A stretch of DNA of 64,000 nt from Selaginella moellendorffii (Eukaryota > Plantae > Lycopodiophyta), in NCBI RefSeq assembly GCF_000143415.4, contig NW_003314360.1, positions 488,595 through 552,594 on the forward strand, in the 5' to 3' direction. How positions within the stretch are numbered: position 1 is the stretch's first letter; each line of letters opens with the position of its first letter. A program made the translations under genes and the position numbers. Below the pieces are notes generated by a model, which was not told the origin of the DNA, searched no databases, and saw only the letters and a list, made by a program, of their open reading frames with translations. Positions 12,014 through 51,510 of the stretch are shown piece by piece.

Positions 12014-13792
12014 TTAGCTGGCGAGAGCTTCCTTGAGCTCCTTATTCTCTTTCATCTCCATGATAATGTCACAGCCCCCGATAAGCTCGCCTTTGTGGTA
12101 GAGCTGAGGATAAGTTGGCCAGTTTGAGAATGCCTTGAGCCCCTGCCTCACCTCCTCGTCACTGAGAATATCAAAGCTGCCAAATTCGATGCCTTCCTCC
12201 TTGAGTGCGCTTGCCACCTTCTTGCTAAACCCGCACTTTGGCTCCTCCGGCGTCCCTTTCATGAAAAGCATTGTCGGGGACGAGTGAATCAGCTTTTTCA
12301 GCCGGCTGTTGATGTCTTCCTTTTCCTCTGTCGCCCCCACAGCTTCCTTGAGCTCGCCACTCTTGTGCATTTCCATGACGATGTCGCATCCACCTATCAG
12401 CTCGCCCTTGAAGTATAGCTGCGGAAACGTTGGCCAGTTGGAGAAGGACTTGATGCCTTGCCGGACCTCTTCGTCGCTCAGAATGTCGAAGGAGCCAAAA
12501 GGAACTCCCACCTCCTCGAGTGCTCCCGCCACTTTCTTGCTGAAACCGCACTTTGGCTCCGACGGACTCCCTTTCATGAACAGCATCACGTCGTGCGAGT
12601 GGATAAGCTTCTTTAGACGCTCCTCGAGAGTTTCCTCCGGTCCCTTGTCGGATCCATTGGCGTGAGCTTTGCTGCCATTCTCTTGCGACTTTAGCTTGGC
12701 GTCCGCAAGAGCTTCTCCCAGCTCCCCGCTCTTGTGCATCTCCATTATCACATCACACCCTCCCAAAAGCTCGCCTTTGTAGTACAGCTGCGGGTATGTG
12801 GGCCAGTTGGAGTAGAGCTTCAAACCTTGACGGACTTCTTCGTCTTGCAAGATGTCGAAGCTCCCAAAATCCACGGACTCCTCCTTGAGCAAACTCACCA
12901 CATTCCGGCTGAAGCCACAGCGAGGCTCTTCGGGGCTCCCCTTCATGAACAGCATCACGGGCTTGGAGCTAACGAGCTTGTCCAGCTTTGACTTGAGCTC
13001 ACCGGACACCGAAGAAGGAGGCTCCTCGGACTTGATTTCCGTCTTGCTCGCTCCATTCTCCTTTGGAGGAGCAGCTTCCCCCGCCAAAGCCTCAACTTTG
13101 GTGGCCAATTCGGCTGGATTCGCGCCCTCCAGCTTGTCGATCACCTCCTGGTTCTGCATCACAAACAGCACACAAGAGTAAGAAAACAACGACCAGATGC
13201 AGCGATTCAGTGACTTTTCCTTTTCTACCTTTATAAAAACGAAGTAAGGCACCACAGAAACGCTGTACTTTTCGGATATTTCTGGATGCTCCTCGGCTTC
13301 AACCTGTGAGTACAATAATTGGTGGATGTTTATTAGTCAAGTCTAGGCAAATCAGAGAAGAGAAATCGAGCACACGCCCTGTCAAGCGAGACATGGCATA
13401 CGGCAGAAGAGAAGGGAAAAAAAAATAGCACCACCAACAACCAGACTCACTTAAGAATGAGACTTGCCATTCACAACTCCACAACAAAAATGTGACCGAT
13501 TTAGAAACGTGGAAGATGAAAGAGAAACCAAATCCAAAGAAGAAAGAACAAGACAAGCAGCAGCGAATCGAAAAAAAAAAATGCGATCCGAGAAATCGAT
13601 GAAGTATTGTATACAAACCCGGAGAAATCTGGCACGCGGAGCAGTGTCGGCACAGAGTTGCTCGAAGACGACATCCATTTGCTTGGAGGCCTCGCACCAG
13701 GGCGCACGGAAATGGAGCACGACCGATTTACCAGCCTTGACAACCTCGTCGAGATGCGCCAATCCACGAGCTTCTTCCACCATGAGCGCCAT
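12014..13792 (-). CDS. GRXS17: Monothiol glutaredoxin GRXS17 (Trx-like domain + 3 CGFS Grx domains), 3 exons
   Basis: APWCEAS Trx motif and three repeats of MLFMKG.P.EP.CGFS...SNWPT.PQLY..GEL.GGCD. Confidence 0.96.
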
Positions 13793-13880
13793 GGCTCTCC
13801 CTCTTTGATCGCTCGAGACCTCCGACCTCGACCTAGAACAGAGGAGAACTAGGGCAAGCTTTTAAAGCGGACGAGCAAGC

Positions 13881-14059
13881 GCATATTCCCTCCCAGCAGA
13901 GAGCGCATATTCCGCCACCGTGGCGGCGTGGGCCCCACCCAGCGTGCAGAACCCCGTTTGCGTGCGTGGAAGGAACGGGCTGTACTCGTGCCTGGCGCCA
14001 CGTGTTGAGCTGCGAGTGGCCTGCCGGATTACTATACTGGGAGAGTGATGTGGATATCC
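13881..14059. promoter_or_regulatory. Three P1BS-like (GNATATNC) sites upstream of GRXS17
   Basis: GCATATTC at 13881 and 13905; GGATATCC at 14052. Confidence 0.4.
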
Positions 14060-14198
14060 CCCAATGTTTGGGAGCACTAAAAGAATGAGTTGTTGTGATG
14101 CAACATCAGTCTCCTTTGTGGAGGTGGAATCGAATCAAACCAACAAACATTACAATCTCTTTCCTCCAAATTCGATCGAAACTTTGTGATGTTCGATT

Positions 14199-17153
14199 TC
14201 ATCCAATTTGCCTCTTCCATTTCCTCGAAGTCATGTATGCCACCCTGTCCATGTACGCTGCATTGTTCTTGTCCCTCATGCCCGTGTCAAAGTTATAGTC
14301 GATGAGCAGCCGAACAATTCTTTGGTTCCCACATCGCACTGCAATGTCCATTGCAGTTTCTCCCGATGTTCCGGCGTTGGGCCTCGCACCCGCCCTCAGT
14401 AGTAGTTCAACCATCTCACTGTCCTGACTAGCAACTGCTTGCAACAGTGGTGTCGACACTTGATCATGGTGATACTCTAGCCCGTCCAGCACAACACCAC
14501 CTTCACTTATAAGGAGTTCCACCATGGTCTTTTCCCCTTTGAAAGCGCACTCGGCCATGAGAGATTGTCCTAAGTCTGCCCACTCCTCCTTGGAAGAAAG
14601 CTCATGTACCAGCTTCCTCAGCTTTTCCAACACCCCTCCCTCGGTATCGATTACCTGGTTAAGGTCCAAATTGGCGATCACGTCCGTGTAATCCTCCTCG
14701 TAGAGGAGGAGGCTATGCAGCTTGTCAAAAACGAGATGAACGTCACCCTTCTCAATTGCTTCCTTAAGCTCCCCCGTCTGGTAGGCTCTAGTACTGCTTT
14801 CATCCTTTCTCTCGTCATCGGTGTCGTGTGGAAGTTTCCCCATCTCTGTCAAGACGGCTAGCACTTCAGCATTCTGCCGGGCGGCTCGCGCAAGGCAGGC
14901 AAAGGACCAGCCGTCAAAGTCAAGCACCCCGGCTGCGTACTCAACCATTTCCCTGCTTCCATTTGCCCCCAGGCTCCTCCACAACCTGTCTTCAACGCGA
15001 TCATGTCGGGCTGGATCCTTCCAATGCGAGATGATGAGTTGGAAGACTGACCAGTCCCCATCTCTCGAGCATGCATGGCTGAAAGGCTCCACTCCATACA
15101 ACTTACATGCCTCCACAAAAATCCTAAGAAGTGGCAGAAAAGCCCGGTGCTGGGGCTCGATATGATGCCTGTGTCGAAACAGCTGCGCCACCTTTGCTGT
15201 AGAACTAGTTATCCCATCATTGGAAGCTGCATCAATCACGAAAACGTCCAGCTCCAGAAACGCTGTCATCACGGCTAAGCTCCAGAAGTCCATGGCATGG
15301 TAAAACAACTCTCTCAAAAAAAGCGGGTCATTCGCAGGTGTCGTTCCCAGAGTCCCCCCTCTTTCAAGCAGGAACAGGACCGCTCCCACCTTGTCACCTT
15401 CGATGGCATACGAAAGTGGAGTATTGAACTCGTTAACCAGCGCTACATTGACGTAGTCGGGCTGCTGCGCATAGTCAAGCAGGATTCTCATCAGTTTGGT
15501 GTTGCCTTGATGCGCCATTCTGTGCAGCGGTTTCAGGTTGCTGCTCGGGTGCCATGTATCGTAGTCCATTCCTAAGTCGTAGAGAAGATAGGACAGTACC
15601 TCGTCACTTTGGCCATCGCATGCTTCGTGCAGTAGCCACTCTTCTTGCACAACGATGTCTCTCCATTTGCTGGCCAGGAAGCGCAGCACAGCTGGGCTCC
15701 CTGGGCGGACGCAGATGCTGCACAGTCGGGAAACATCCCTTTCAGGGTTGAAACTCCAAGTGACCCCCGCTCTGTCCATGATATACTCGACGCCCATTTT
15801 GAAATCAATCTTGCAAAAGAGATGTAGCAGCGTGTTCCCATCAATGTCTACCACCATGTTCTTGCTTGGCTGCTCAACGAAAGCGTCCAGAACGTTAGGG
15901 AACCTTCTCCTGAGACGGTTGAGCATGTCCCTGTACTCTGCCGACGAAACGAATGCAAGATCATTGTTGTTGTTGTTGTTGTTGCAGCTGTCGCATCGGA
16001 CGACATTCCATAGCTTATCATAAGCAGCGTGTGCATGTTCCAGGCACTGCTCCAGGGAGAATCTATTTGTACGATCCTGGCAGCAGCCGTCAACCATGGC
16101 AAAGAGCTCGTAAAAAACTGGCTCGATCACAGGCTGTTTCAAGCCTGGTGGAATTTCAAGAGTCACTGGACAGCCTGGGAATATCTTGTTGTCAATAATT
16201 TCCTCGATCTCATCACGCTTCTCAGGGCCATCAGGGATGAAACCATCCCAGGACATCTCGATCCATAGCATGCCCAAGGAGTATACATCTGATGGGAAAG
16301 GATTATCCACAATGAGCTTAAAGCCTTCTGGATCATCCAGCGCATCTGAAACCTCAGGCGATATCCAGAACAGCGACCCGCCCAGCGAGTTGAGGTAATC
16401 AACGTCTCTCACCTTGAAGCTGAATCCAAAGTCTCCGAGCTTGGGCGTGCAGAAGCTGTCCAAAAGCACGTTTCTACCTTTGAGATCTCCGTGGTAAACG
16501 CCATTTCGATGGCAAGTCTTTACTCCCACCACCACCTCCATGAAGATTTCCAGCTTTGTCTTCCACCAAGATGGAAGCTCTTCCAAGCCCGGACCCCGAG
16601 ACTTAAGAAACCTGCTAAGATCACCGTGCGGGCCTTCCACGAGCTCCATGACGATGCAGACGCCATTGAGATCGCTGTTGCGGGTAACCCCATAGACATG
16701 CACCACATTCCTGGTTCCTTGTAGCACCCTTACATTGCAGGCCTCCCTCAAGACTTCCACAACCTCATCCAGTTCAACTTCGCCAGTGTCGATTTTCTTA
16801 ACAGCAACTGTTATCATTTTCTCGCTGTGGTCGCCTTTCAAAATGGACCTTGACGGCGTTTGGTGCCTTTTTGCGTTAACCCAAGGCCCTCTGCTAAGCT
16901 CAAACCTCTCTCCATGGCTCCCCATCAGCATACCTTTAAAGATTTTTCCAAAGCTTCCGCCATCGATGCTCCCTACAGAAGCCAGCTTTAGAGTGTCCAG
17001 CAGATATGTCTCTGCGCGTCTGTACAAGTCAACAGCTACTGCTGGATCCCTTAGATCTTCCCAAGCCTGCATAGCGGCTTCATACCGCGATATCAAGTAC
17101 TCCGAATCTGAAACAGATGACTCTAGCTCAAATTTTGATGTTAAGGAGGCCAT
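14199..17153 (-). CDS. Non-RD TKL-type protein kinase with C-terminal ankyrin repeats (RIPK4/ANKK1-like architecture), intronless
   Basis: Kinase motifs GGSFG, VAVKK, alphaC Glu (LREA), HGDLKGRN, DFG, WISPE, DVYSLG. Ankyrin motifs GNTLLH, LLHEAC, KPLHRMA..GN, TPLSYAI, TPLLQAV, GETAMDIA. First ATG is at 17153. Confidence 0.9.
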   Translation of the reverse strand: MASLTSKFELESSVSDSEYLISRYEAAMQAWEDLRDPAVAVDLYRRAETYLLDTLKLASVGSIDGGSFGKIFKGMLMGSHGERFELSRGPWVNAKRHQTPSRSILKGDHSEKMITVAVKKIDTGEVELDEVVEVLREACNVRVLQGTRNVVHVYGVTRNSDLNGVCIVMELVEGPHGDLSRFLKSRGPGLEELPSWWKTKLEIFMEVVVGVKTCHRNGVYHGDLKGRNVLLDSFCTPKLGDFGFSFKVRDVDYLNSLGGSLFWISPEVSDALDDPEGFKLIVDNPFPSDVYSLGMLWIEMSWDGFIPDGPEKRDEIEEIIDNKIFPGCPVTLEIPPGLKQPVIEPVFYELFAMVDGCCQDRTNRFSLEQCLEHAHAAYDKLWNVVRCDSCNNNNNNNDLAFVSSAEYRDMLNRLRRRFPNVLDAFVEQPSKNMVVDIDGNTLLHLFCKIDFKMGVEYIMDRAGVTWSFNPERDVSRLCSICVRPGSPAVLRFLASKWRDIVVQEEWLLHEACDGQSDEVLSYLLYDLGMDYDTWHPSSNLKPLHRMAHQGNTKLMRILLDYAQQPDYVNVALVNEFNTPLSYAIEGDKVGAVLFLLERGGTLGTTPANDPLFLRELFYHAMDFWSLAVMTAFLELDVFVIDAASNDGITSSTAKVAQLFRHRHHIEPQHRAFLPLLRIFVEACKLYGVEPFSHACSRDGDWSVFQLIISHWKDPARHDRVEDRLWRSLGANGSREMVEYAAGVLDFDGWSFACLARAARQNAEVLAVLTEMGKLPHDTDDERKDESSTRAYQTGELKEAIEKGDVHLVFDKLHSLLLYEEDYTDVIANLDLNQVIDTEGGVLEKLRKLVHELSSKEEWADLGQSLMAECAFKGEKTMVELLISEGGVVLDGLEYHHDQVSTPLLQAVASQDSEMVELLLRAGARPNAGTSGETAMDIAVRCGNQRIVRLLIDYNFDTGMRDKNNAAYMDRVAYMTSRKWKRQIG

Positions 17154-17203
17154 GCAGGCTTGCCCCACGCTCAGAAATTGTGCCCCCTATACATACACGC
17201 GCT

Positions 17204-17529
17204 CTCATCTAATTGAGCAATTCTTAGTCCACTGATCCCTTGCTTTGACAAAGTCAAGCAGAATTAATTGGAATGAGAAGTCAACTGATCCTCATCTAAT
17301 TTAGCAATTTAGTCAACTGATCCCTTGCTTTGGTAGCTTCTTCTTCTTGACTTTGTTGATCAAGTGTGGCAAACAGCTGGAACACACTTCAGAAACAAGT
17401 TGGCTGACGATCAAAGTTGCTGATTGATTGATCGTGCGAGAGATCGAAAAATGAAGAATTTTCAGAGTCATACGCACTCATCATGGAAGAGATCACCGCC
17501 ATTAATTGGAATGAGAAGTCAACTGATCC
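17204..17529. promoter_or_regulatory. Bidirectional promoter with direct repeats and five W-boxes (TTGACT)
   Basis: Repeat A at 17204-17247 and 17291-17332; repeat B at 17263-17291 and 17501-17529. AGTCAA at 17252, 17279, 17311 and 17517; TTGACT at 17347. Confidence 0.7.
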
Positions 17530-17588
17530 AATGCATGATCTAATATAAGTTCTTCAATAAATATGTGTGAAGATCGATTCACCGGAAT

Positions 17589-18926
17589 ATGGCGACTGAG
17601 GGCTTGGTCGCCGCAGGCGCTAGTGCAGCATTGGGAGCTCTTCGAGGAGATCTTCGAGGAACAGCCGACCTTCTGATCAAGCTTGCTTGTGCTGCTCGCA
17701 ACAGCATAGGCAGATGCCAGGCGATGGCAGACAAGGTGAAGATGGTTACCACCGCCCTCGAGAGCAGATCATACAGGTACGACGATGTCAACCTTCAGGC
17801 TAATCTAGAAAAGCTGCTAGTTGTGATGAAAGACTGCGTGTGTCTTGTCGAGAAACACAGCAAGACGAGTACGGTGAGCTTCTTCTTCTCGTGCCACGCT
17901 CTCACTGTTGACGAATTTGACGACCTCGACGCGCGCCTCAATCGCTGCATCAGCTGCTTGAATCTGAACTTCCACATCTCCTCGTATGATCGCAGTCATG
18001 AGCACAAAGACGAGATCATAGCCCAAGTACAGGCCAACACAGCACGAACTATTGAGGAGATAAAGCAGCTGGTCCATGGCCAGGAGCCCGTAGAATATTT
18101 GACAGCCGTGCAGGGCGTTGTGACCATGGGTGAAGCCTTGGCCGGGGACTACATGATATCTGCGACGCTCACCGACAACAGCTCCTCAGTGTCACGGAAA
18201 GTCATCCTAGTGCAGTCACACGAGACAAAGAAGGAAGTTGCGATCCTGGAGAAACTAAGCCTTCACGAGTGCATACTTGAGTTTCTTGGCATCTTTCCAT
18301 ATGGTGAGTCCAAGTTTTATCTTGTCTTTGAGAGGCCCTCCGAGGAAATGACAACCTTGGACGAACTGATCAATAAGAACCCGGGGAGTTTTATGAGTGA
18401 CTGGAGAGTAAAGAGACAGATCGCTCTGGAGCTGGCAAGAGGTATGAGAGTCTCTCATCTGGCCGGTGTGGTCCACAAGAATTTCCGCAGCTCCAACATA
18501 TTTCTTAGCGGTGACCTTCAGCACGCTAAGATCTTTGGCTTCTACCAGGGAAGGATCAAGCTGGAGCCAAGTGCCAAGAAGTGGATGAACGATGAGCAAG
18601 TCCGCTGGGCTGCACCTGAGCAAGTTCAGAGACACCGACCTGCCTTTGATGAAAAGTGTGACATCTACTCACTGGGAGTGGTGATTTGGGAGCTCATCAC
18701 TGGGAACTTTCCTTTCGCCAAATACACTAACTACCGAAAACTTAGTAGAGATCGGAGCGAAAATGTTGCCCTCTTGGATGACTTCCCTGTGGAATGCAAA
18801 GCAGGTGAACTGGGCAAGTTCAGCAGAATCTCTGAGCTCTGTAGAGATCCTTTGCCTGATAACAGACCATCTCTCGAGAACATTATCAATGATCTCCACA
18901 AGCTCCTTCCTGAAGAGATGATTTGA
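17589..18926 (+). CDS. MLKL-like protein: N-terminal four-helix-bundle/HeLo-like domain + pseudokinase, intronless
   Basis: Helical N-terminus of ~130 aa (ARNSIGRCQAMADKV...LEKLLVVMKDC...FDDLDARLNRC). Kinase fold with VILV in place of VAIK, HKNFRSSN in place of HRD, IFGF in place of DFG; WAAPE, DIYSLG and RPS are retained. Confidence 0.82.
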   Translation: MATEGLVAAGASAALGALRGDLRGTADLLIKLACAARNSIGRCQAMADKVKMVTTALESRSYRYDDVNLQANLEKLLVVMKDCVCLVEKHSKTSTVSFFFSCHALTVDEFDDLDARLNRCISCLNLNFHISSYDRSHEHKDEIIAQVQANTARTIEEIKQLVHGQEPVEYLTAVQGVVTMGEALAGDYMISATLTDNSSSVSRKVILVQSHETKKEVAILEKLSLHECILEFLGIFPYGESKFYLVFERPSEEMTTLDELINKNPGSFMSDWRVKRQIALELARGMRVSHLAGVVHKNFRSSNIFLSGDLQHAKIFGFYQGRIKLEPSAKKWMNDEQVRWAAPEQVQRHRPAFDEKCDIYSLGVVIWELITGNFPFAKYTNYRKLSRDRSENVALLDDFPVECKAGELGKFSRISELCRDPLPDNRPSLENIINDLHKLLPEEMI

Positions 18927-19189
18927 AAGTTGAAGTGCTTCATATTTCGGTGCAGTGTGTGAAGAAAATTATAGTAAAAGAGCTTGGATCTTAGATCATC
19001 CATTTCTTGAAAGCGCATTTGGCTCCGGAGGCAGATCCTTGCAATCTTGTATGCTGGTACTGGTTGACATGCTCATGCTCAAATCAGGTTCATGGCCTTT
19101 AAGGAGAAAAAGTAAAGTAAATATTCTCTCGGTTCAAGGTTATCTTAGAATATCAAGTTTTGTATGGAGTTTGTTAAAATGAATGCTTC

Positions 19190-28695: not shown

Positions 28696-31133
28696 CTACC
28701 AGTAGTCTCTGCACGAGCACAGGCCATCTTCAAAGAGATGAGCCCTGCTCCCATCTCTCACACTGATCTTGCGCTGGAACAGCATGGACACGTACTTGAT
28801 CACGGCATGGCAGTCAGCACACATCCGGTGCTTGCTACAAATGCGCATCATCGCGTCCCGAGGTAGTTTGATCACACCAAACGCCACAGCCAGCCTCTCG
28901 CTGTGGTGTCTCTCGGCTTCCACCTTCCCTCTGATCAATCCCTCGCTGCTAGCCTTGAAAATGTAGCCAACGCTCGTCATCCTCAACCGCATTCGCTCCA
29001 GGAACCTCTCGAGCTTGCGAGACATGGTGTGGTTCTTCCTCGAATGGCCTTCGAGAAACCTGTAAACTTTGCCGTGGATCTCGATGAAGCTCGACTGCCG
29101 CTGCTTGTACCGCCTCATCTTGGCGATCATCTCCTCGGCCTTGGCACGCATCCCATCCTCCACGTACATGTTTGCAAGGATCTCGTAGGGGAGGTGGTCC
29201 TTGCTATCCAGCTTGAGCATCTCCCTCGCCGCTCTCCTTGCTCGCGGGAGATCCTTGTGAACTTCGCTAGCCGTCAGCAAGCTCAGCCAGTCGAGCCGCC
29301 CTGGATGAAACGGCGAGTGATTGACGAGATCCTCCACCTTGGCGACTCGGCCTTGCCGTCCCAGCAGCTGCATCACCATTCTCAGGTGCTCCACTCGAGG
29401 CCGGATGTTAAAGTCGGTGATCATCGAGTGGTACAAGCTCCGGCACTCTCCGAGCCTCCCTTTGTGGCTTGAGCCCGCGAGGAGCGCGGTGAAGGTCTCA
29501 GCATGAGGTAGCAATCCTTCCAAGTTCAAGCTGTGATACAGCTCCGCAGCTCCAGTGACAAAGCCGTGATCGGCAAATGCCGAGATGAGCGTCGTGTACC
29601 TCGTCGTTGTCTTGTACGCCATCCCCTCAATCTTGTCCCTGGCAACCTCCAAGAGCATGCACTTGCCGTAGAAGTTGGCGAGCGCCAGCTCCAGAACGTC
29701 CTTGACTTGGATTGCCGACTTCGCGAGCTCGAGCACCCGGGATCCATACTCGAGAGCCACGAGACCGGCGCAAGCGTCGATGGCTGCCACGATCGTAAAC
29801 TTGTCGGGCGAGGTCCCGTCTTGCACCATCCGCTCGAAGAAGTGGAGGGCCTCGTACGAGTCACCGCGCCTGGCGTAGGCCGTGATGATCGAGTTCCAAG
29901 TGTAGGCGTTCTTGGCGGGGATCCTCTCGAAGAGCCGGGTGGCCGTCTCCATCCGGTTGCACATCGCGTACATGTGAACCACCGCGGTCCCGGCACAAAC
30001 ATCCGACTCCAGCCCCGCCAACAGGACCTGCTGGTGGATCACACTCCCGTAGAGCAGCTCCGCCGAGTTTGCGCAAGCGTCGAGAGCAGCCACCAAGCTC
30101 GCTCGATCCTGGACGCCGCCCTCGAGCTGCATCATCCGGTGGAGCACCACTCCTTCCACCGGAGCTCCACTTCGAGTGAGCGCGACGATGAGCTGCGTCC
30201 AAGTCACGCTGCTCTTGCAGGCCATGGCGTGGAAGACTCTGGCGGCCGCGTCGAGCTGGTCGAAGGCGTAGTACATGGCGATGAGAGCGTTCCCCAGGAT
30301 GGTATCGCGGGTGGCGTAGCCCCGAGACGCGGCCAGCTCGTGGAGAAGCCGCCCGGCTTTGACACTCCTCTTCTGGAGGCTGAGAGCCGCGACGCTGGCA
30401 CAGGCATTCACCGCGTGAGTGAAGGTGACGGCGTTTGGTTCTTGGCCCTGGAGCAGCATCCTCCGGAAGAGTCGAAGAGTCTCGAGTCCAAACTCCACTC
30501 TTTGGAAGCCGTGAGGGAGGAGCTTGTCCTTGGAGCGCAGCACCAGAGCTCCCAGCATGAAGTTCCAGGCGATCACGTCCTTCCTCTCCATTCTCTCAAA
30601 CACGGCATAGGCCTGCTCGGTGTCCCTGCATTTGCCATACATGTCGATCAGCTGCGTAGCGATTAGAACGTGAGAATCCACACCTGGTTCTGAGAGTTCT
30701 TGCTGGTGGAGCTGGCTTCCTCCCTCCAGATCTCCCTTGCTTGCGCAGTCTCTCAAGGTGGACATTCGATGCTGGTATTGCTCCAGAGTCATGTTGAGTT
30801 GCTTGAGATCATCCTTGCCTGGTCGTCGGGAAGTGCTGCTGGGTTTTGCAACTTTGGAGATCTCCTTCTTCTCCTGGCTGGGCTTTGCAACTTTGGAGAT
30901 CTCCTTCTTCTCCAGCTCCTTTCTTTTGTTTGCTTTCGAATCAGGTGCTTTCTTCCTGGCTTGTTCTTCCGCAGCATTCCTTCGTTTCATCTTCTTTCCT
31001 TTGGGCACCACAGGAGCGGCGGGCAAAGTGGACAGGGATCCAAACAAGCGCACGACGATCCTGGAAAGATTGTTGGAGTGAAACAATGTGAATCGCTAGC
31101 GAGCGCGAGCACTTACCTGTGATGCCTGGTCAT
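28696..31133 (-). CDS. PLS-DYW PPR protein (C-to-U RNA editing factor)
   Basis: PPR motifs, HHSERLA, RMCADCH, terminal CSCRDYW. ATG 31133 joins in frame through intron 31061-31116. The N-terminal region contains EKKEISKVAKPS twice. Confidence 0.93.
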
Positions 31134-32620: not shown

Positions 32621-34417
32621 TTACTTGGGGAGGTTCTCGGAGAGCTGTGTCATGAAGGCACCGACGGATGCTGCGTCTGTCTGGATCCACGCGGCGTCGA
32701 AACCATCCTGCTGGAAATCTACACCCAAGTTGGCTGCCACCGTCTTGAACACGGAGCCAAACCGGTTCCCCATCTGAGCTCCCAGCCGGAGCCTGTGTGA
32801 GACGCCAACCACGAGTGCCTTGTCCGATTGAGGACAGCGAATGGCGCAGACGAGCGGCTTGCTCCGAGCACCTTGCTCCCGGAGAGCGTCCATGACGAAG
32901 TAGCAGAGCTTGGTGAGAGCCATGGGACGAGCAAGAAGCTCCACGTCGTGACCATCCTCGAGCTTGAACCACCTGAACATCTTGGTGTTCTTTACGAATC
33001 CCTGCTTTGTCACCGCTAAGCTTCCCTGCCTCAGTATCGCGCGCTGGACCTTGATGGCTAGTTCCATTCCCTGCTGGAGCTCATGCCACTTCTTTGGCGC
33101 CAGTGCCGAATAGGCCCGCATGAACTGGCCGCCGTGGTCATCGCAGCTTGCCTCGAGCAGTGCTGTGAGCCCGTAGACAACATCTGCCGCAGATACTTCG
33201 GAGCTGTATCCGTGGAGCTTCTGGAAACTACGGTAGTACAGGTCGGTCAGGCCAAACTGCGGTGACGACCTCTGGAATTCCTCCTTCATTCTGCGTCGAG
33301 TCTCTCCGCTCATATACTCGTACTTCTGCTGGCCTTCCACCAGCGCAATCCCCATGGTGGCCAGCAGCAACTTGAGCCTCTTGAGCCCCCCGTCACTCCA
33401 GGTCTTGAGCTTGGTGGCCACGTACGAGGAACACAGCATGGAATCATACAGCGTCCACTCTCTCAGCAGCATCAACCGTGGCTCCTCGTCGTTCGTAATG
33501 CGAGACCTGTCTGGCGCCTTAACCACGGTCCCGTCTTTCATGGTCACCTTTGTTACCATCTCCGAGTTGCCGGAGGTCTTGACGTAAGTGTCCAGCTCCA
33601 TGACCCCCGACTGGTATCTCTCCATGGTGAGCCTTTCGTGAACAAACTGGTCCGTGAGGGAGACGCATGCCAGCCACAGAAGCTCGTGGGTGTTGATGTG
33701 CAAGGCGTGAGAGATATCATACACTTGACGCCCAGCAGCTCTCCCGTGAAACGTCCCTGTTGAGTAGTAGTCTTTCTTCCGTCTCCGCATATCTCTCCTC
33801 AAGTTGTCCGCGTGATCAGAAGAGTCGTCCCTGCCCCTGCCCCTGCCCCTTTTCCTCATGTTATCGTGCTTGTCACCACCACCACCACCATCGAGTTCCT
33901 CTTCATCGTCGGATTCTTCCTCGTCTTCGTCTTCTTCACCATCGCTGGCAGCAGTCATAAATGAGAAATCCGCGAGGGAGCCAACATCAAAGTCGTAGAC
34001 AATGTCCCTCTCCATCTCCTCCTCGCGGGTATAGAGCACGGTTACCTGCTGGTTGTGATCACTCCAATTGTTGAGGTGGATGGGCCTGTGACTGTCCACC
34101 ACAAACACAAGAACCCTAGGCCCCAGCTTGAGCTGCCGCCGGAGATCTTGGGTGCCTCCCCAGTTGATGAGCAGCACCACCACCGGCTCCTCCGCCTGGA
34201 TGGCCGCGGCACGGCTGCCCACATCGGCCATTCTCGACACTGGGAACACCGAGTGGCGCACATTGTCCGCGTTGAGGATGGAGCGAAAGATCTTGAGCGC
34301 GCACACCGAATCGGCGTCCACCGTCGAGGGGAGGATGTGGAGAGGGCAAGAGGAGGCGGCAGAGGCGGCGGATTTGAGGCGCCGGTAGAAGTGAGCTCCG
34401 CTGCTCTCTCGCACCAT
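32621..34417 (-). CDS. CDC45: DNA replication factor CDC45, intronless
   Basis: DADSVCALKI, VVDSHRPIHLNN, acidic loop, RLMLLREWTLYDSM, EVSAADVVY. Confidence 0.96.
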   Translation of the reverse strand: MVRESSGAHFYRRLKSAASAASSCPLHILPSTVDADSVCALKIFRSILNADNVRHSVFPVSRMADVGSRAAAIQAEEPVVVLLINWGGTQDLRRQLKLGPRVLVFVVDSHRPIHLNNWSDHNQQVTVLYTREEEMERDIVYDFDVGSLADFSFMTAASDGEEDEDEEESDDEEELDGGGGGDKHDNMRKRGRGRGRDDSSDHADNLRRDMRRRKKDYYSTGTFHGRAAGRQVYDISHALHINTHELLWLACVSLTDQFVHERLTMERYQSGVMELDTYVKTSGNSEMVTKVTMKDGTVVKAPDRSRITNDEEPRLMLLREWTLYDSMLCSSYVATKLKTWSDGGLKRLKLLLATMGIALVEGQQKYEYMSGETRRRMKEEFQRSSPQFGLTDLYYRSFQKLHGYSSEVSAADVVYGLTALLEASCDDHGGQFMRAYSALAPKKWHELQQGMELAIKVQRAILRQGSLAVTKQGFVKNTKMFRWFKLEDGHDVELLARPMALTKLCYFVMDALREQGARSKPLVCAIRCPQSDKALVVGVSHRLRLGAQMGNRFGSVFKTVAANLGVDFQQDGFDAAWIQTDAASVGAFMTQLSENLPK

Positions 34418-39578: not shown

Positions 39579-42500
39579 CTACAAACGCCCACTGTGGCTG
39601 ACGAGGGGGGTGTCGTCCGCCACCGACAGTGGCTGCGACGAGGCGCACGACTCGGCCTCGTAGCTGTAGTAGCCCCGCTCCCTCGCCGAGAGCAGCATCC
39701 GGACCACCTGACGCATGGATGGCCGCTCCAAGGGCTGGAAGTTGGTGCAAAACAGCGCAACCTTGAGCACCAGGACCATCTCGTCTACAACCGACTGGTC
39801 GGACAGATCTAGTCGCGTGTCCAGCAGCTCCGCCGCCGAGCACTGCGTCCCTCGCCTCACCCATGTCACCAGGTCCCCGCCCAGCTCCAGCGGCTGGATG
39901 GGACGCCGCCCCGTTACCAGCTCCAGCAACACCACGCCAAAGCTGTAGATGTCACACTTCTCCGTCACGATCATTGTGTAGGCAAACTCTGGAGATCCAC
40001 ACCAAGTAAGTGTCACTGCTGTAGGTGTGCGTAGCTTACCGGGTGCAATGTAACCGTATGATCCAGCCACCGCCGTCGTGGACCTCCCCTCGGGTTCGTC
40101 CAAGAGCTTGGCCAGCCCGAAGTCTCCGACGTGAGCCTCAAAGTTCTCGTCCAGCAGGATGTTGTTGGACTTGATGTCTCTGTGCACCACCAGCGGCTTG
40201 CAATCGTGATGGAGATACGCCAGCCCCTCCGCGGCTCCCACGGCGATGTTGTACCGCCGGTTCCAGTCGAGAGGGCAGTCGCTCCTGTGAAGCAGCTCAC
40301 CGAGGCTGCCATTGGACATGTACTCGTAGAGCAAGAGATTGCAGCCTTGGTGGCGGCAGAAGCCCATGAGCTTGACGATGTTGCAGTGGCGGACCTGGCC
40401 CAGCGTGGACAGCTCCGTGTTGAAGCTGTTTAGAAAGCTCGAGTGGGCTCCGTCGCTCTGGGTCATGATCTTCTTCACAGCCACCACCTCGCCGGTGCCC
40501 GGCACCACCGCCTTGTACACCGTCCCGGACGCGCCACTCCCAAGCACGTAGCTCTCGGCGAAGTCGTGCGTCGCCGCCACGATGTCGGCGTACGTGAAGC
40601 TCGACTTGGCCACCTGGAACTTGTCGCTGCTGTCGCCGCCGCTGAAGTACCTGCTGCTGCTGGGATCGTCCAACGGATTGAGCGGCGTGGGCCGCCGGGA
40701 GCAAAACCAAAGGGAGCCCGCCGCGATGAACACCACCGCGCCGCCAAGTATCCCAAACACCACGCCCAGCACGAGCTTGACGGGCACCGCCTGCCTGGAC
40801 GACGCTAGGATGCCCCCGCCACCACCCGGAGTGGCGGAGTTTGGACCGCTGCCCACACTGGTCTGGCACAGCTGGAACAAGGGAGCTCCACAGAGGCCAC
40901 TGTTGTCCGCAAAGTTGGTGGCGTCCATGTTTGCGAAGGCCGGAGCGCCGGGCAGCGGGCCGGCGAGCTGATTGTGGGAGACGTTGAAGACGATGAGGCT
41001 GCGAAGCCTGACGAAGGAGGCCGGGATGGAGCCCGACAGCATGTTGTTGGAGAGGTAGAGGTACTCGAGGAGGATGAGGTTTCCCAGCTCCTCGGGTATG
41101 GGCCCCGAGAGATAGTTGTGGCTGAGGTTGAGCATGATCTGGAGGCTCGTCAGGTTCCCCAGCTCGGGCGGTATCGAGCCAGAGAGCCTGTTTCCTCCAA
41201 GGTGGACCTCCGTCAACCTCAAGCTGCCACCCAGGGCCGCCGGAACTTGACCCTGGAGCTGGTTGTCCGACAGCCTCAATCGGTCCAGTGACTTGAGCGA
41301 GCCGATCCTGTCCGGTATGCCACCCGTGAACAGGTTCTTGCTGAGATCCAGCAGCTGCAAGTTGGTGCAGTTTGTGATGGACGCTGGAATCTCACCCGTC
41401 AGCCTGTTGCTCGAGACGTTGAGCACGACAAGCTGCGAGAGTCTGCCAATGTCCGGTGGCAGCGTTCCCGTGAGATCGTTGTTGTTGAGGAGCAGCCTTG
41501 ACAGGCTCGTGCTCGGCGAGGGGATCCCTCCGGTGAATCGGTTCCCGTAGAGCTCCAGCGACGTGAGGTTGACAAAGCGGCTGAGCTCCACGGGTATGGT
41601 CCCTTTGAACATGTTGTCGCCGAGGCGGAGCTGGACAAGGGAGTTGCAACTCCGCACCGCCCAAGGGATCTGGCCGCTGAGCCCGTTGCTGTAGAGGTTT
41701 AGCCAGATGAGGCCACCGTTCCAGCACACGTACTTTGGTATGCCACCCACGAGATTGTTCTCGGACAAGTCGAGAACCGCCAGCCTGCTGTTCTTACCCA
41801 TGAGCGGAGGGATGCTGCCCGTTATGTTGTTCTCGAAGAGATGGAAGCGCTCCAGCGTTGGGATGTCTTGCAGCACCGGCGGGATGTCTCCACTCAGGCT
41901 GTTCATCGAGAAGTCCAGCACCTTGAGACGCTTGAACTGTCCAAACTCCGCGGGCACGGGTCCGCTCAGCCGGTTCTCAAACAGGTGGAGAAGCTCCAGG
42001 GTGTCGATCGTTGCGAGGTCCCCGGGTATGGCACCCGTCAGCTGATTCTCCGACACGTCGATCTCCTTCGCCATGCTGCAGTTGCCGAGCTCCGCCGGGA
42101 TGCTCCCGGTTAGCGAGTTGGAGTAGATGTAGAGGTACTCGAGGCTCGCCAACTTTCCAAGCGAGGGCGGGATGGAGCCCTGTAGCTGGTTCTTGTAGAG
42201 GGCGAGCATGGTCAGGTTGGATAGCTGGCCCAGCTGCGGAGGGATGCTCCCGGTGAGGCAGTTTTGCCAGAGGACCAAGCTTTGGAGGTTGCGCATGGAG
42301 CCAATCTGGGGAGGGATGGCGCCTGAGATGGAGTTTTGCGCGAGGCCCAGGAAGGTCATGCTGCTGCAGTTGCTGATCTCGGGAGGGATGGAGCCGGAGA
42401 AGCTGTTCTGGCCGGCCCGGATGATCTCGAGGTTTTGGAGGCGGCCAAGGCTGGCGGGGATTGGGCCCGTGAGATTGTTGGTGTAGAGCACCAGCTGCTG

Positions 42501-43028
42501 CAACGAGGCGAGGCCTTCGAAAGAGTCGGGGATGTTGTCGGTGAGGAAATTGTTGTAGAGGAAGAGCTGGCGGAGGGACGCGAGCGATCCCAGCTCGGCC
42601 GGGATCGGACCCCCGAACGCGTTGCTGCTGAGGTCCAGGGTCTGGAGGCGCCTGCATCGCGACAGCTGCCAGGGGATGGATCCATGGAGCTTGTTCTTGG
42701 AGAGGACGAGCGTCTCGAGCCGGGTGAGGTTACCGATGGACGCTGGCAATGTGCCGGAGATGTTGTGAGCGTCAAGATCTAGCACCGCGACGCGGCTCGA
42801 GTTGCCGGCACAAGTGACCCCTTCCCAAGAACATACTGTGCCGTTACCGGATCCACTGCTATACTTACTCTCACTTGCGGATGACCAGGACCACGACCGA
42901 AGAGCGTCGCCGGGGAGCACCCAGCTGCGCTTTACCTCTGCTAGAACTGCCGCATCATCCTCTTCCGGATCGCTCACCACCAAAGTCAAAAACCCCACAA
43001 CCAGGATGGTGGATAGCCAGCTGCTCAT
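39579..43028 (-). CDS. LRR receptor-like kinase, subfamily XI type (intron 39989-40039)
   Basis: Signal peptide, CSWEGVTC cap, >20 plant LRRs, TM helix and an RD kinase (HRDIKSNN, DFG, GSYGYIAPE). Confidence 0.95.
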   Translation of the reverse strand: MSSWLSTILVVGFLTLVVSDPEEDDAAVLAEVKRSWVLPGDALRSWSWSSASESKYSSGSGNGTVCSWEGVTCAGNSSRVAVLDLDAHNISGTLPASIGNLTRLETLVLSKNKLHGSIPWQLSRCRRLQTLDLSSNAFGGPIPAELGSLASLRQLFLYNNFLTDNIPDSFEGLASLQQLVLYTNNLTGPIPASLGRLQNLEIIRAGQNSFSGSIPPEISNCSSMTFLGLAQNSISGAIPPQIGSMRNLQSLVLWQNCLTGSIPPQLGQLSNLTMLALYKNQLQGSIPPSLGKLASLEYLYIYSNSLTGSIPAELGNCSMAKEIDVSENQLTGAIPGDLATIDTLELLHLFENRLSGPVPAEFGQFKRLKVLDFSMNSLSGDIPPVLQDIPTLERFHLFENNITGSIPPLMGKNSRLAVLDLSENNLVGGIPKYVCWNGGLIWLNLYSNGLSGQIPWAVRSCNSLVQLRLGDNMFKGTIPVELSRFVNLTSLELYGNRFTGGIPSPSTSLSRLLLNNNDLTGTLPPDIGRLSQLVVLNVSSNRLTGEIPASITNCTNLQLLDLSKNLFTGGIPDRIGSLKSLDRLRLSDNQLQGQVPAALGGSLRLTEVHLGGNRLSGSIPPELGNLTSLQIMLNLSHNYLSGPIPEELGNLILLEYLYLSNNMLSGSIPASFVRLRSLIVFNVSHNQLAGPLPGAPAFANMDATNFADNSGLCGAPLFQLCQTSVGSGPNSATPGGGGGILASSRQAVPVKLVLGVVFGILGGAVVFIAAGSLWFCSRRPTPLNPLDDPSSSRYFSGGDSSDKFQVAKSSFTYADIVAATHDFAESYVLGSGASGTVYKAVVPGTGEVVAVKKIMTQSDGAHSSFLNSFNTELSTLGQVRHCNIVKLMGFCRHQGCNLLLYEYMSNGSLGELLHRSDCPLDWNRRYNIAVGAAEGLAYLHHDCKPLVVHRDIKSNNILLDENFEAHVGDFGLAKLLDEPEGRSTTAVAGSYGYIAPGKLRTPTAVTLTWCGSPEFAYTMIVTEKCDIYSFGVVLLELVTGRRPIQPLELGGDLVTWVRRGTQCSAAELLDTRLDLSDQSVVDEMVLVLKVALFCTNFQPLERPSMRQVVRMLLSARERGYYSYEAESCASSQPLSVADDTPLVSHSGRL

Positions 43029-48217: not shown

Positions 48218-51200
48218 ATGGCGGATGAGAAAATAGAAGAGTATGTAGAATTCATAGAAGACACAGATGGAGCAGAGGCCCATGAATTCTCCCTTTCTGA
48301 GCAGAGAGTGAATGTAGATCTGGTTCTGCGGGTGTTTTCGGCCATGTCCGTCACTGTGAAGCGCGTTGAGAACGAAAAGGTTCGATGGAGGGCTCTAGAG
48401 GCAAGAAAAGAAGACGGCCTCAGCAAAGCCATGTTCGATGCTGGATCTTCTCACATCGTTCGTGCCGGGAGGCCTGGTAAACACTCATTTTCTAAGCATT
48501 GTGTTTCGCCTGGGTAGTCATAGCGCTGTGGGTTTCCCGTGTGGCCCTTGTGAGTTGGATCTGATATCTTGTGTGTCTTCCATGATCTGTGTTTGTCTGG
48601 GTTGTTTCAGGCTATGGTATTCTTCTGTTGCTTGCTTGACCTGCGGCGCTCATTTGGGCGAGTTTGTTTCTATTTGGCCTTGGCGTGGGTTATGTTTTGG
48701 CTATGGCATCTGTGCTTTGTCGTGTGCTGTTTGATGAAGTGGCTATGGCGTCAGGCTTTTGTTCGTGGCCGTTTGCTTGTTGGGCTGGATGTTTTTGTAT
48801 CAGCCACGATTTTGTAGTCTGCCTGATTGCGATTGTGCTCATTGCTTTCATGTAGTCTGGTGTTTTCCGGTTGTTGTCCCTGCATGCGTCTATTTGTGTT
48901 TGGTGCGGCTCTGGTGTTTTTCTATGTAGTTGTGAACTGTTCTGACAACTTTTTGTGTGCTGCAGTGCCCTCTGCGACAGCTCTTCAGGCTGCACCAGGT
49001 AAGCATCCATTCTTGTATACTCTTGTGGGTTTGTAACTTGACGTTTGAGGTACGAGATCTGAGTATGTGTGTGATCTTGCTCTCGTGCTGTTGGATTGTT
49101 GGTATTCTGCGATCTTTTGGAATTGATTAAATGGACCTTATTGCAGTCGATTGGGCCAGTGTGGTCACACCATGTTGGCTATGTTGCTCACTCCTTTTCT
49201 TGCCTGAAACAGAAACAAAAACAACCATAACAGGATCGGCCCTGTTACAGGCGTGTGATACTTCCATCTCCACGAAATCGCGGTTCATATCTCTGTTGGC
49301 TCCTCACGAGTTGGGTTATAAGGCGAAATTTCCCTCGGCCCGGACACTCATGTGCGCGCTTAGTAACCTGCCATGCCTTCTATGGGAAGGCGTAGGAGAT
49401 GGACTTGTGGAGCTCGACAATCGGTTTGCGCAGAGGTTGTCAGAGCGCCAGATCACTGTGCTCTTGGCTCCCAGCGGTTCAGGAAAAACGAGAATGTTGA
49501 TCGAACTTGCCTGCAGTAGATTCACGTTGTTTCTCACGGGTAAGCGTCCGATGGTTGGATTTGGAGGAGGATCGGATGATGTAGACAGGGTTGCCAGGTG
49601 GATGGAGACTCGGTTGCCCGCAGGTGAACACGATCTTGATCCGAATCATGCAGTGGTGCGGTTTGGTGTTGGGATTTTGATTCTTGTCCGGTTGAAATAT
49701 TTGAAGTTGCTGAAAGCGCTGAAACCTGGGCTTCATCCTCGTGATTGGGCTTTTTTCCAGTTGGAGTACCCGGCAGTTGATGATGTCTTCCATGCTGCGG
49801 TTGAAGCCTTGATCGATTGTGTCCCAGTGGATCAGCAACTGCCTATGGATCAGCTGACGGAGGCTATAAGGAATCTTGCAGATGACATTGGCTGGAAGGA
49901 GGGGGTGGTTGTCCTTGATGAGGCTCAAATGCTGCTTCATTGTATGAAAGGTCGATTCAAGTCTGAACTCACTCCTACGAAAGGGCAGCCGTCGTTGAAC
50001 CCCATGTTACTGGCTCTGAAGTCGTACGGTTTCTTGAAGAGCTGCTTGTTTGTTGCGGGCACTGGCACGAGTATGCTTAAGGTTCGGGAAAGACTTCTGG
50101 GAGGGACAGTGAAGCCTTTCGATGTAACCGAAATTTATAGCTTACCTGGCTTTGACGACACCAACATTCCAGCCTTTCTCCAACGGTTTATAGATATCAG
50201 CAGGCTGGACATGCCCGCGATTACCTCCATGTACACTGGAAGAAGGCGACTTTTGAGCACGGCGATTGAGAAGTACGTTGTGCAGGACAAACCACCAGAG
50301 GATTGGTTCCAAGTTTTCTTCTTGGAGTTGATCAACAAGCCTGGGGTGGAGCTTGGACTTCTTCGGTCTTTAAGGGATGAAGCGGAGCGGGTGTGGGATG
50401 ATCCAGAGATGGCACAAATGATTGAGGACATTCTGTTCACGTATTATCTTACAGGTATGTGTCGCTGATTCTTTACAGATATATTCCTCATGCTGGTTTT
50501 TTCCAGGTTTTGGTCATGTTATTGTGCAGCGGAAGAGGAGTGTCATGACCTTAGTTGATTGTGGCTTTGCAACGCTGCTTGAGAGTGACGCCAGTGCCGG
50601 ACCTTTTGCACCGATTATTCCACACATAAGAGGGGTGAGGGGTGATGAAGCCGGACCTGGTTCTTCAGGTCCGGCTAACGTGCGATACGTGATCCTTCAA
50701 GAGCCGATGATTGCAGAAGCACTCTGGGACCATATGCCTGCTGGTACAGTAATGGAGCGAGTCATCAGCACAGCTGCAGACGCATCAGTCCTTGGCATTA
50801 CCTTTGAGCGGTTTGCGTGCATCGTGGGGGAGGCATTTGACAACAAGCTACCAGCTGAGGTTTTGGGTTTGCAGGAAACAGATGTGGTCTACAAGGAGGA
50901 GTATGAAGTTGTAAGGCCAAGAGGGCACTCGGGGGTGCTGGTTCAGGAGATTCGGACTGAAGAACAGTTGAACCTGTGGCTTGAAGCTGTTGAGGCTGGT
51001 GCATCGTTTGCTACTTATGCATGGCTTGGACCATTCCAAGAAGCTGGACCAGATGGGATGTTTCTTCTCAGAAGCAAAGAGTCGCACAAGATGATGCCTG
51101 TGTTTCTACAGTTCAGAACAGATTCTGGGCTGGGTGTGACTCAAGCTTTTTCTTCACTCGACATCATGAAGATTGACAAGATACTGCATTCAGGAGGAGC

Positions 51201-51510
51201 CTCTCGAAAACTAAAACAGTGGTGCTGGACTGGCTACCTTAGGCTGGTTGTTTCACCGAACCCACATCCAAAGGTAGGAAAGGTGGCCTTAGGAGATGTG
51301 AGGCGGAGTGGGCGAGCGAGAAAGGGGCGCAAAGAAATCCCCCTGGTAAGGCATATTTCATTTGATCTTTGACATGTTTATTTTCTCCTTCAGGTTTCAC
51401 CTCTATCGGCTGTTTGGGCTGGTCGGAAACTTCGGGGGATCGTCAACCAGGAATTGCTGGATGCTGTGGAAGAGGTGAAGGAAGGTTTGCAGAAACGGAA
51501 AAGGGGGTGA
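48218..51510 (+). CDS. Crinkler/RHS-like protein: N-terminal header + P-loop NTPase + PD-(D/E)xK-type nuclease (exons 48218-48476, 48966-48998, 49147-50454, 50507-~51345, ~51394-51510)
   Basis: Walker A APSGSGKT, Walker B VVVLDEAQ, YTGRRR, LVDCG, LQEP, GITFE, GPDGMF...FLQFR. All junctions stay in frame. Telo-box repeats lie upstream (48181-48200). Confidence 0.75.

Follow-up and report, generated by a model that had tools for sequence, protein, structure and literature searches.

A conserved kinase-ankyrin and MLKL-like gene pair: candidate cell-death or defence switch of non-seed land plants

We analyzed 64,000 nucleotides of the genome of the lycophyte Selaginella moellendorffii (assembly GCF_000143415.4, contig NW_003314360.1, positions 488,595 to 552,594 of the forward strand), here called the window and numbered from its first letter. 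In this window two intronless open reading frames (ORFs) diverge head-to-head with 435 bp between their ATGs (17154-17588). The gene on the minus strand, which we call KA, is predicted to encode a protein kinase followed by ankyrin repeats. The gene on the plus strand, which we call ML, is predicted to encode a helical bundle like that of animal MLKL followed by a pseudokinase. We found KA and ML close together in a liverwort, in mosses and in this lycophyte, and the conservation of this linkage in three deep lineages is our main new result. The pair is probably an ancient and undescribed switch, and is put forward here as a candidate in cell death or defence.

Results and Discussion

KA and ML are neighbours in three deep lineages of land plants

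The two genes and their predicted domains occupy the following positions in the window.

14199-17153, minus strand: KA gene, an intronless coding sequence of 984 aa from the first ATG
16029-16982, minus strand: KA kinase domain (about residues 58-375), from Pfam, with catalytic residues invariant in four orthologues
14229-15896, minus strand: KA C-terminal ankyrin-type repeat region (about residues 420-975), from Pfam, PDB and BLASTP
17154-17588, no strand: divergent promoter region common to KA and ML, 435 bp, with two direct-repeat pairs
17589-18926, plus strand: ML gene, an intronless coding sequence of 445 aa with MLKL-type architecture
17589-18083, plus strand: ML N-terminal helical domain (about residues 1-165), an MLKL_N-type bundle and a predicted long brace helix
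18096-18923, plus strand: ML pseudokinase domain (about residues 170-445), with VILV for VAIK, HKN for HRD and FGF for DFG

In Riccia and Sphagnum, orthologues of full-length KA lie 4.6-6.3 kb from those of ML, but the divergent orientation was not kept. The arrangements are given below, with coordinates from the locus named in each line.

Selaginella moellendorffii (lycophyte), window: KA 14199-17153 (minus) and ML 17589-18926 (plus); head-to-head, 0.4 kb apart
Riccia sorocarpa (liverwort), L002: KA 1463-4570 (plus), a single ORF, and ML 10788-12257 (plus); tandem with KA upstream, about 6 kb apart
Sphagnum jensenii (moss), L008: KA 5296-8391 (plus), 1031 aa, and ML 13006-14352 (minus), 448 aa with MLKL_N and Pkinase; tail-to-tail, 4.6 kb apart
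Sphagnum-like environmental contig, L003/L013: KA matches from 20159 to the locus end (minus) and ML 10001-11346 (plus); convergent, 8.8 kb apart

When the whole 64-kb window was compared by tblastx with the Riccia, Sphagnum and Diphasiastrum loci, nothing was found in common but KA and ML. Thus, general synteny has gone while the pair stayed within 0.4-9 kb. The conserved feature is the proximity of KA and ML, not a shared promoter or the head-to-head order, and the orientation differs by lineage. In every lineage seen, neither KA nor ML has an intron, at least over the part that is conserved. The contrast of an active KA with a dead ML is likewise kept across land-plant lineages as far apart as liverworts and lycophytes. 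A preliminary description of this DNA had proposed that the two genes form a head-to-head module. The idea of a module is strengthened by the linkage in liverwort and moss, but the head-to-head order is not conserved and a second Selaginella scaffold, described below, has no KA beside ML.

In the Sphagnum-like environmental contig, the reading frame of ML breaks in two near codon 243 (L003/L013, about 10684-10732; 243 and 204 aa), and the same split was seen in many independent metagenome assemblies. The KA copy beside this split ML seems to lack a stretch of its central region. In this species the module may be in decay, or ML may have a tiny intron.

ML is an MLKL-like protein with a pseudokinase domain

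A public protein has exactly the sequence of ML, and its near-identical cluster members are S. moellendorffii entries (XP_024515694.1, automatically named 'HT1', and EFJ12866.1) that go under the names 'HT1' or 'hypothetical'. The full automatic name, 'serine/threonine-protein kinase HT1', misleads, as ML combines an MLKL_N domain with a pseudokinase. When the Selaginella sequence alone was compared with Pfam it matched Pkinase (E 1e-23) and, weakly and under the Pfam cut-off, MLKL_N (PF22215; E 0.003). In an alignment of eight ML-family sequences from five taxa, every sequence matched MLKL_N (best E 7.6e-9). The N-terminal family profile was also compared with all PDB sequences. This gave seven matches at E 1.3e-4 to 1.2e-3, all of them four-helix bundles (4HB) of human or mouse MLKL, with the next match at E 0.16; the single-sequence N-terminus gave chance matches only. 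Positions 36-140 of the profile align with the MLKL bundles and have a C-x3-C motif in common with them. Residues D27, C43, K49, K75, D82, C83, F110, D114 and R116 are invariant in the N-terminal domain of the family.

A language-model feature search (Atlas) with the whole of ML returned chordate MLKL as the three best clusters (0.97-0.98, with 234-235 of 256 features in common). Kinase clusters from Basidiomycota and Mucoromycota scored 0.95-0.97, under chordate MLKL, and a seed-plant cluster of DUF1221 kinases appeared only at rank 10. The N-terminus alone gave MCAfunc, MLKL_N and RPW8 clusters at 0.88-0.89, which we regard as a lead only. From the Pfam, PDB and Atlas results, the MLKL-like nature of ML that the preliminary description had proposed is well supported at the level of sequence.

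The kinase fold of ML appears to be catalytically dead. All family members are without the beta3 Lys, have H[KR][NSK] instead of HRD, and have FGF, FGL or FAF instead of DFG, in agreement with the earlier description of ML as a helical bundle followed by a kinase fold that has lost all three catalytic motifs. The domain keeps RWAAPE, and an activation-loop serine, S328 (18570-18572), is invariant in the motif PSxKKW. Used as a single sequence against the PDB, the kinase part of ML matched the MLKL pseudokinase best (57.6 bits, with B-Raf at 53.7). With the family pseudokinase profile, Raf, DLK, ZAK and CTR1 scored about 86 bits and MLKL 79.8 bits. Since these kinases score as well as MLKL, the domain is best classed as TKL-type, without demonstrable orthology to animal MLKL, and this fits the conclusion that 4HB-kinase fusions arose repeatedly in plants (10.64898/2026.08.07.743466). 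Family members are 445-469 aa long and end about 10-25 residues past the kinase fold, that is, without a C-terminal extension. None of the eight aligned sequences matched DUF1221 (PF06760) at E up to 0.05.

KA is predicted to be an active kinase with an ankyrin solenoid

KA matches Pfam Pkinase (E 4e-27, residues 110-379) and then ankyrin repeats to the C-terminus (Ank_2, E 1e-24). Its catalytic set comprises a G-loop GSFGK, VAVK with K119 (16797-16799), E137 in alphaC, HGDLKGRN with D223 (16485-16487), DFG with D241 (16431-16433), and SPE. Full-length orthologues were found in Riccia, Sphagnum and Pteridium, and the alignment comprised Selaginella KA, Pteridium aquilinum P0035, Sphagnum jensenii P0036 and the Riccia sorocarpa ORF (L002:1463-4570; 32% identity over 966 aa). 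Invariant in all four were G-x-F-G, K119 of VAVK, E137, D223 of HGDLKGxN, D241 of DFG, PE and the alphaF Asp. This conservation and the Pfam matches agree with the previous proposal of a catalytically intact kinase followed by ankyrins. The catalytic loop reads HGD, making KA a non-RD kinase, a class that is over-represented among innate-immune kinases.

The ankyrin repeats are canonical at the end of the protein and degenerate in the middle, with Pfam Ank_2, Ank and Ank_4 matches at residues 513-564 and 863-970. PDB matches of this region were DARPin and ankyrin proteins. Residues 421-602 and 687-964 aligned by BLASTP to the ankyrin array of a fungal protein (P0037), suggesting that an ankyrin-type solenoid takes up most of the last 570 residues. 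KA looks like an active non-RD kinase joined to an ankyrin solenoid.

The closest solved relatives of the KA kinase are AMPK, TNIK, MINK1, a CDPK and the insulin receptor (E about 1e-12 to 1e-10). There was no RIP kinase among the 60 best PDB matches of KA, and the core motif of the RHIM, [IV]Q[IVLC]G, had no match in KA or ML. The kinship with RIPKs suggested in the preliminary description is not borne out by these searches; the likeness to RIPK4 and ANKK1 is architectural, and RIPK is a label for KA by analogy of architecture only. The exact KA protein was absent from a public collection of 15 billion proteins, in which it was not returned as a self-match. Therefore, KA seems to be unannotated or mis-modelled in the Selaginella annotation.

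Contigs fit two separate intronless mRNAs

The KA ORF spans 14199-17168 when counted from an upstream GTG, with the first ATG at 17153. Transcription was examined with contigs from four public runs belonging to four studies; that the runs are RNA is a guess, and contig depth in them cannot rank expression. The KA ORF was covered collinearly and without gaps by contigs with starts at 14041, 14079 or 14087 and ends at 17001 or 17156 (for example, 14087-17001 and 14079-17156). The ML ORF was covered in the same way (17567-18983 and 17590-18928, with some contigs reaching 19104). Contigs were nearly absent from 17157-17566, where the sole exception was one low-depth piece of 128 nt (17358-17485) in run X8. 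This pattern fits two separate intronless mRNAs. The two divergent intronless genes that had been described earlier, with the gap of 435 bp between their ATGs, are confirmed. The same four runs hold contigs of both KA and ML. The word depth of ML contigs was several-fold above that of KA contigs in all four runs, although depth says little about expression.

Two pairs of direct repeats lie in the promoter region. One pair is 29 nt long (at 17263 and 17501, 100% identical, 238 bp apart) and the other 24 nt (at 17224 and 17309, 96% identical, 85 bp apart). These repeats (17224-17529) may be cis-elements or what is left of a small transposon.

The ML family is found in non-seed land plants

Relatives of ML were sought by an exhaustive HMMER search with residues 1-195 among 1.84 billion representatives (E up to 1e-3). 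Besides ML itself, five clusters were found, none of them fungal.

Selaginella fragment P0021
Riccia sorocarpa (liverwort)
Diphasiastrum complanatum (lycophyte), two tandem genes
Pteridium aquilinum (fern), from a transcriptome
A 243-aa product from environmental contigs

This last product is 89% identical to the ML of Sphagnum jensenii. Judged from this search, ML is a small family that appears only in non-seed land plants. The exhaustive search was needed to find it, as a word-index protein search with full-length ML returned ML itself and generic kinases of many organisms, and with the N-terminus returned only ML itself. A metagenome scan with the ML alignment gave four true family loci, one of them long enough to show a KA neighbour; the remaining matches were generic kinases. 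Every taxon in which KA was found (Selaginella, Riccia, Sphagnum and Pteridium) also carries ML, and the Pteridium transcriptome holds both.

Our search of the literature on MLKL together with bryophytes, lycophytes, ferns or ankyrin found no paper on a kinase-ankyrin partner, on the ML family or on the KA-ML pair. Plant MLKLs have been described as a seed-plant family (10.1101/681015). In the NLRtracker tables of Chia et al. 2024, Sphagnum fallax has four (MLKL)(PKin) proteins and S. magellanicum two, Azolla and Salvinia have proteins of the layout (MLKL)(PKin)(PKin), and the count is zero for Selaginella, Diphasiastrum, Marchantia and Physcomitrium; the text of that paper does not discuss them (PMC11218826).

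Proposed mechanism

We propose that the two genes make up a module for cell death or immunity in non-seed land plants that has been linked since before liverworts, mosses and lycophytes diverged, and in which KA activates ML by phosphorylation. We give this proposal about an even chance of being correct. ML would be the executor, with an MLKL_N-type bundle that attacks or gates membranes and is restrained through the brace by the catalytically dead TKL pseudokinase. KA would be its dedicated upstream kinase, and the ankyrin solenoid of KA could sense or scaffold a ligand, an effector or ML itself. The non-RD kinase of KA would then phosphorylate the pseudokinase of ML, for which the most plausible site is S328 in the activation loop (PSxKKW). 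Phosphorylation would free the ML bundle and allow it to oligomerise, as RIPK3 does to MLKL in animals. Binding of KA to ML, the direction of regulation, the phosphosite and the membrane activity are steps that we infer.

Several observations favour such a module: ML is of MLKL type, KA and ML show the active/dead split, the genes are linked in three lineages, they co-occur, contigs of both are found in the same runs, and the activation-loop serine is conserved. A fungal pair of similar layout in Penicillium, described below, is a further lead. The deep conservation of the linkage substantially strengthens the idea of a module; the phosphorylation mechanism remains a proposal. Regulation of ML by KA through phosphorylation of the pseudokinase, with the ankyrins as sensor or scaffold, is the most economical reading. 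A complex prediction for the KA kinase (residues 40-395) and the ML pseudokinase (residues 165-445), run without supplied alignments, gave an ipSAE of 0.01, which counts neither way on binding.

Exceptions to the linkage and alternative explanations

Several points weigh against this module. In Diphasiastrum complanatum (CM055103.1, 25.625-25.667 Mb; L001, L007) there are two near-identical ML genes of 461 and 469 aa, about 20.8 kb apart, indicating a recent tandem duplication, and no KA was found near them in 42 kb. On another Selaginella scaffold, GL377636.1 (L009), the ML allele is 448 aa long with a 9-nt insertion and directly adjoins a glutaredoxin gene, and window positions 13920-17559, which hold KA and the promoter, are replaced by 311 unrelated bases. 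No KA lies beside this ML within 10 kb on either side (21 kb), and the ML allele is expressed there. ML can therefore exist, and perhaps work, without an adjacent KA.

Further points of this kind concern the proteins and the sample. Physical interaction of KA with ML, and phosphorylation of ML by KA, are putative, and nothing in the kinase of KA resembles RIP kinases specifically. AF2 models of ML reached pLDDT 32.7 (single sequence) and 43.5 (eight-sequence alignment) with an all-helical N-terminus of low confidence; these models being too uncertain, the proposed 4HB fold of ML draws on sequence comparison. ML had a dN/dS of 0.66 when the two Selaginella haplotypes, with their 20 differences, were compared, and of 0.6-0.7 for the Sphagnum species. 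At such short distances, with few substitutions, these values could reflect fast evolution of the immune type or relaxed constraint, and it is the latter that would speak against a module. Finally, the sample of about five taxa for KA and ML is small.

The scaffold GL377636.1 is also rearranged, with positions 6843-9971 of L009 corresponding to 11833-18775 of the window and a truncated ML copy on the other side of the glutaredoxin gene. This copy joins window positions 17501-18314 to 18630-18775, is annotated as the 170-aa P0021, and is preceded by an inverted copy of 17341-17501. It is probably transcribed. A joint between 18314 and 18630 in runs X1 and X5 (315 nt skipped, with an extra CCTT) was considered as a splice form of ML and rejected because it matches the truncated copy exactly. 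Upstream of the rearranged locus (L009, 49-3572) is a Ty3/Gypsy retrotransposon of the chromovirus type, with protease, reverse transcriptase, RNase H, integrase and chromodomain. Runs X7 and X8 contain a KA allele that is ~1.7% diverged from the window and departs from its sequence 3 nt upstream of the ATG; the 30 nt beyond the 5' end of KA in these runs occur in neither the window nor any fetched locus. The departure 3 nt before the ATG suggests that KA probably sits elsewhere on the second Selaginella haplotype.

The broken linkage in Diphasiastrum and on one Selaginella scaffold bears on whether KA and ML are functionally related at all. Their proximity could be a relic of ancestral adjacency, or of a duplication that gave rise to two genes with a kinase fold, and a few lineages would have kept it by chance. 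This explanation accommodates the varying spacing and orientation, the lack of a shared regulatory unit outside Selaginella and a sample of only three lineages, and common descent would be in keeping with the local similarity of the KA and ML kinase domains near the alphaE helix and the catalytic loop (31% over 49 aa). It does not sit well with synteny that has otherwise fully decayed, yet leaves KA and ML within 0.4-9 kb of each other in three lineages. By our own estimate, independent placement within 10 kb has a chance of ~20 kb / genome size, or of the order of 1e-4 per genome. Every KA-bearing taxon, moreover, also has ML. We consider it unlikely that the two genes are functionally unrelated.

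KA could instead be a negative regulator or guard that keeps ML inactive by constitutive binding or phosphorylation, so that loss of KA, or its inhibition by effectors that target kinases or ankyrins, frees ML. Such toxin-antidote or guard logic would also select for tight linkage, and linkage that is kept while orientation changes is what it predicts for a dangerous executor co-inherited with its restrainer. The several-fold greater depth of ML contigs in the four runs is in keeping with this, within the limits of depth as a measure of expression. If the antidote were obligatory, however, it would be risky for the second Selaginella scaffold and Diphasiastrum to hold intact ML genes, expressed or annotated, with no KA adjacent, although KA may act in trans from elsewhere. 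On balance this guard function seems to us improbable.

We think it very unlikely that ML is instead a sensor or decoy, whose dead kinase baits effectors aimed at TKL/Raf-like kinases while KA relays the signal via other substrates and the bundle is an adaptor and not a pore former: a pseudokinase profile equally close to MLKL and to Raf, DLK, ZAK and CTR1, a dN/dS that suits a fast-evolving bait and a structurally polymorphic locus with a truncated, expressed ML copy all accord with it, but the N-terminal domain is kept family-wide, matches MLKL_N and has invariant residues that align to the human 4HB, which a mere adaptor need not keep, and the overall feature profile is nearest to true MLKL. 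Effector baits are known from seed plants, where they include ZED1, RKS1, PBL2 and Pto.

Other features of the window

The remainder of the window is plant nuclear DNA of a typical kind. A gene with a thioredoxin and three glutaredoxin domains (GRXS17/PICOT-like) lies at 12014-13792, a PPR-DYW editing factor at 28696-31086, an apparently intronless CDC45 at 32621-34417 and a leucine-rich repeat (LRR) receptor kinase at 39579-43028; there are also a PPR gene and a BAHD transferase. No extra copies of KA or ML were found within the 64 kb, where the LRR kinase at ~40 kb gave generic kinase matches only. A second ORF of 445 aa (49131-50468) was considered as an ML paralogue and rejected, as it is unrelated to ML. 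At 49131-51372 on the plus strand, two long ORFs of 445 and 316 aa overlap in different frames and match no Pfam family except, weakly, AAA_25.

Significance

How plant proteins of the MLKL type are activated is an open question. To our knowledge, kinase-driven activation of MLKL is known only from vertebrate necroptosis. KA is a concrete candidate for an activator or regulator, found beside ML in liverworts, mosses and lycophytes, and the two genes are small and intronless, so that they can be cloned and tested directly. The pair would extend the principle of paired sensors and executors in plant immunity past NLRs and past seed plants. It also makes it possible to ask, by comparing animals, fungi and plants, whether 4HB-pseudokinase executors and the kinases upstream of them have a single origin or several.

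A broader idea, which we offer tentatively and hold to be possible but short of even chances, is that the pair represents an ancestral necroptosis-like cassette of land plants in which an ankyrin sensor kinase phosphorylates an MLKL-type executor. This cassette would have been linked since before the bryophyte/lycophyte split and lost or replaced in seed plants, and its logic or origin might be in common with fungal pairs of a kinase-ankyrin and a HeLo-pseudokinase gene. If this were true, kinase-to-MLKL signalling would not be an animal invention.

Comparison with known systems

The pair resembles RIPK3 and MLKL of animals in several respects. ML shares with animal MLKL a predicted MLKL_N four-helix bundle with profile homology to that of human and mouse MLKL, a predicted brace, a dead TKL pseudokinase, a length of about 450 aa and the lack of a tail. 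KA, like RIPK3, would be an active partner kinase and candidate activator, and ML has a conserved serine in the activation loop of the pseudokinase. In contrast to the animal system, KA has no RHIM and no specific similarity to RIPKs, and ML is without the beta3 lysine that animal MLKL retains. The genes for RIPK3 and MLKL are, as far as we know, not neighbours.

RIPK4 and ANKK1, like KA, have an N-terminal kinase followed by a C-terminal ankyrin array. They differ in showing no sequence affinity with KA beyond generic kinase and Ank folds, and KA, with HGD in its catalytic loop, is of the non-RD class. We know of no action of RIPK4 on MLKL.

Seed-plant MLKLs are longer than ML and have a C-terminal extension, and we know of no dedicated linked kinase described for this family. 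The representative of the DUF1221 cluster in Atlas is 664 aa long. Like ML, these proteins (AtMLKL1-3; clade 1 of Bennett et al. 2026) combine an N-terminus of the HeLo/4HB type with a pseudokinase, and their immune function was shown in Arabidopsis (Mahdi et al., 10.1101/681015). DUF1221 is the hallmark of the seed-plant family (Bennett et al. 2026, 10.64898/2026.08.07.743466), whereas no aligned ML-family sequence matched it and ML ends right after the kinase.

In fungi, HeLo and HELL domains are fused to kinases or pseudokinases (review PMC12881547). We found one case in Penicillium pancosmium (L090, 8023-13474), identified via ankyrin similarity, in which the kinase-ankyrin gene encoding P0037 is head-to-head with, and 278 bp from, a gene for a HeLo and DUF7580/pseudokinase protein. 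P0037 has an RD-type kinase and >12 Ank repeats. Its partner, which belongs to an Ascomycota family, has HKN for HRD and GFE for DFG. This arrangement of a kinase-ankyrin gene head-to-head with a bundle-pseudokinase gene is like that of KA and ML in Selaginella. Unlike KA, the fungal kinase is of the RD type, and it is tied to KA only by the general resemblance of kinases and Ank repeats; its partner has a HeLo bundle (PF14479) where ML has MLKL_N.

Among paired plant immune receptors, as with KA and ML, genes are adjacent with a conserved linkage, which for KA and ML is seen in Selaginella, Riccia and two Sphagnum species, with the second Selaginella scaffold and Diphasiastrum as exceptions. 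The wheat pair R3NLR/R3AK and Pm13 are similar to KA-ML in that a sensor is linked to an executor of the MLKL type, whose 4HB executes cell death (10.64898/2026.08.07.743466, 10.64898/2026.08.07.743458, PMC10951266). The authors also conclude that plant 4HB-kinase fusions arose several times (10.64898/2026.08.07.743466). Linked NLR/MLKL pairs are restricted to Poales, and R3AK keeps the kinase catalytic residues (10.64898/2026.08.07.743466, 10.64898/2026.08.07.743458). The partner in the wheat pairs is an NLR and not a kinase-ankyrin protein, and KA-ML is found in bryophytes and lycophytes.

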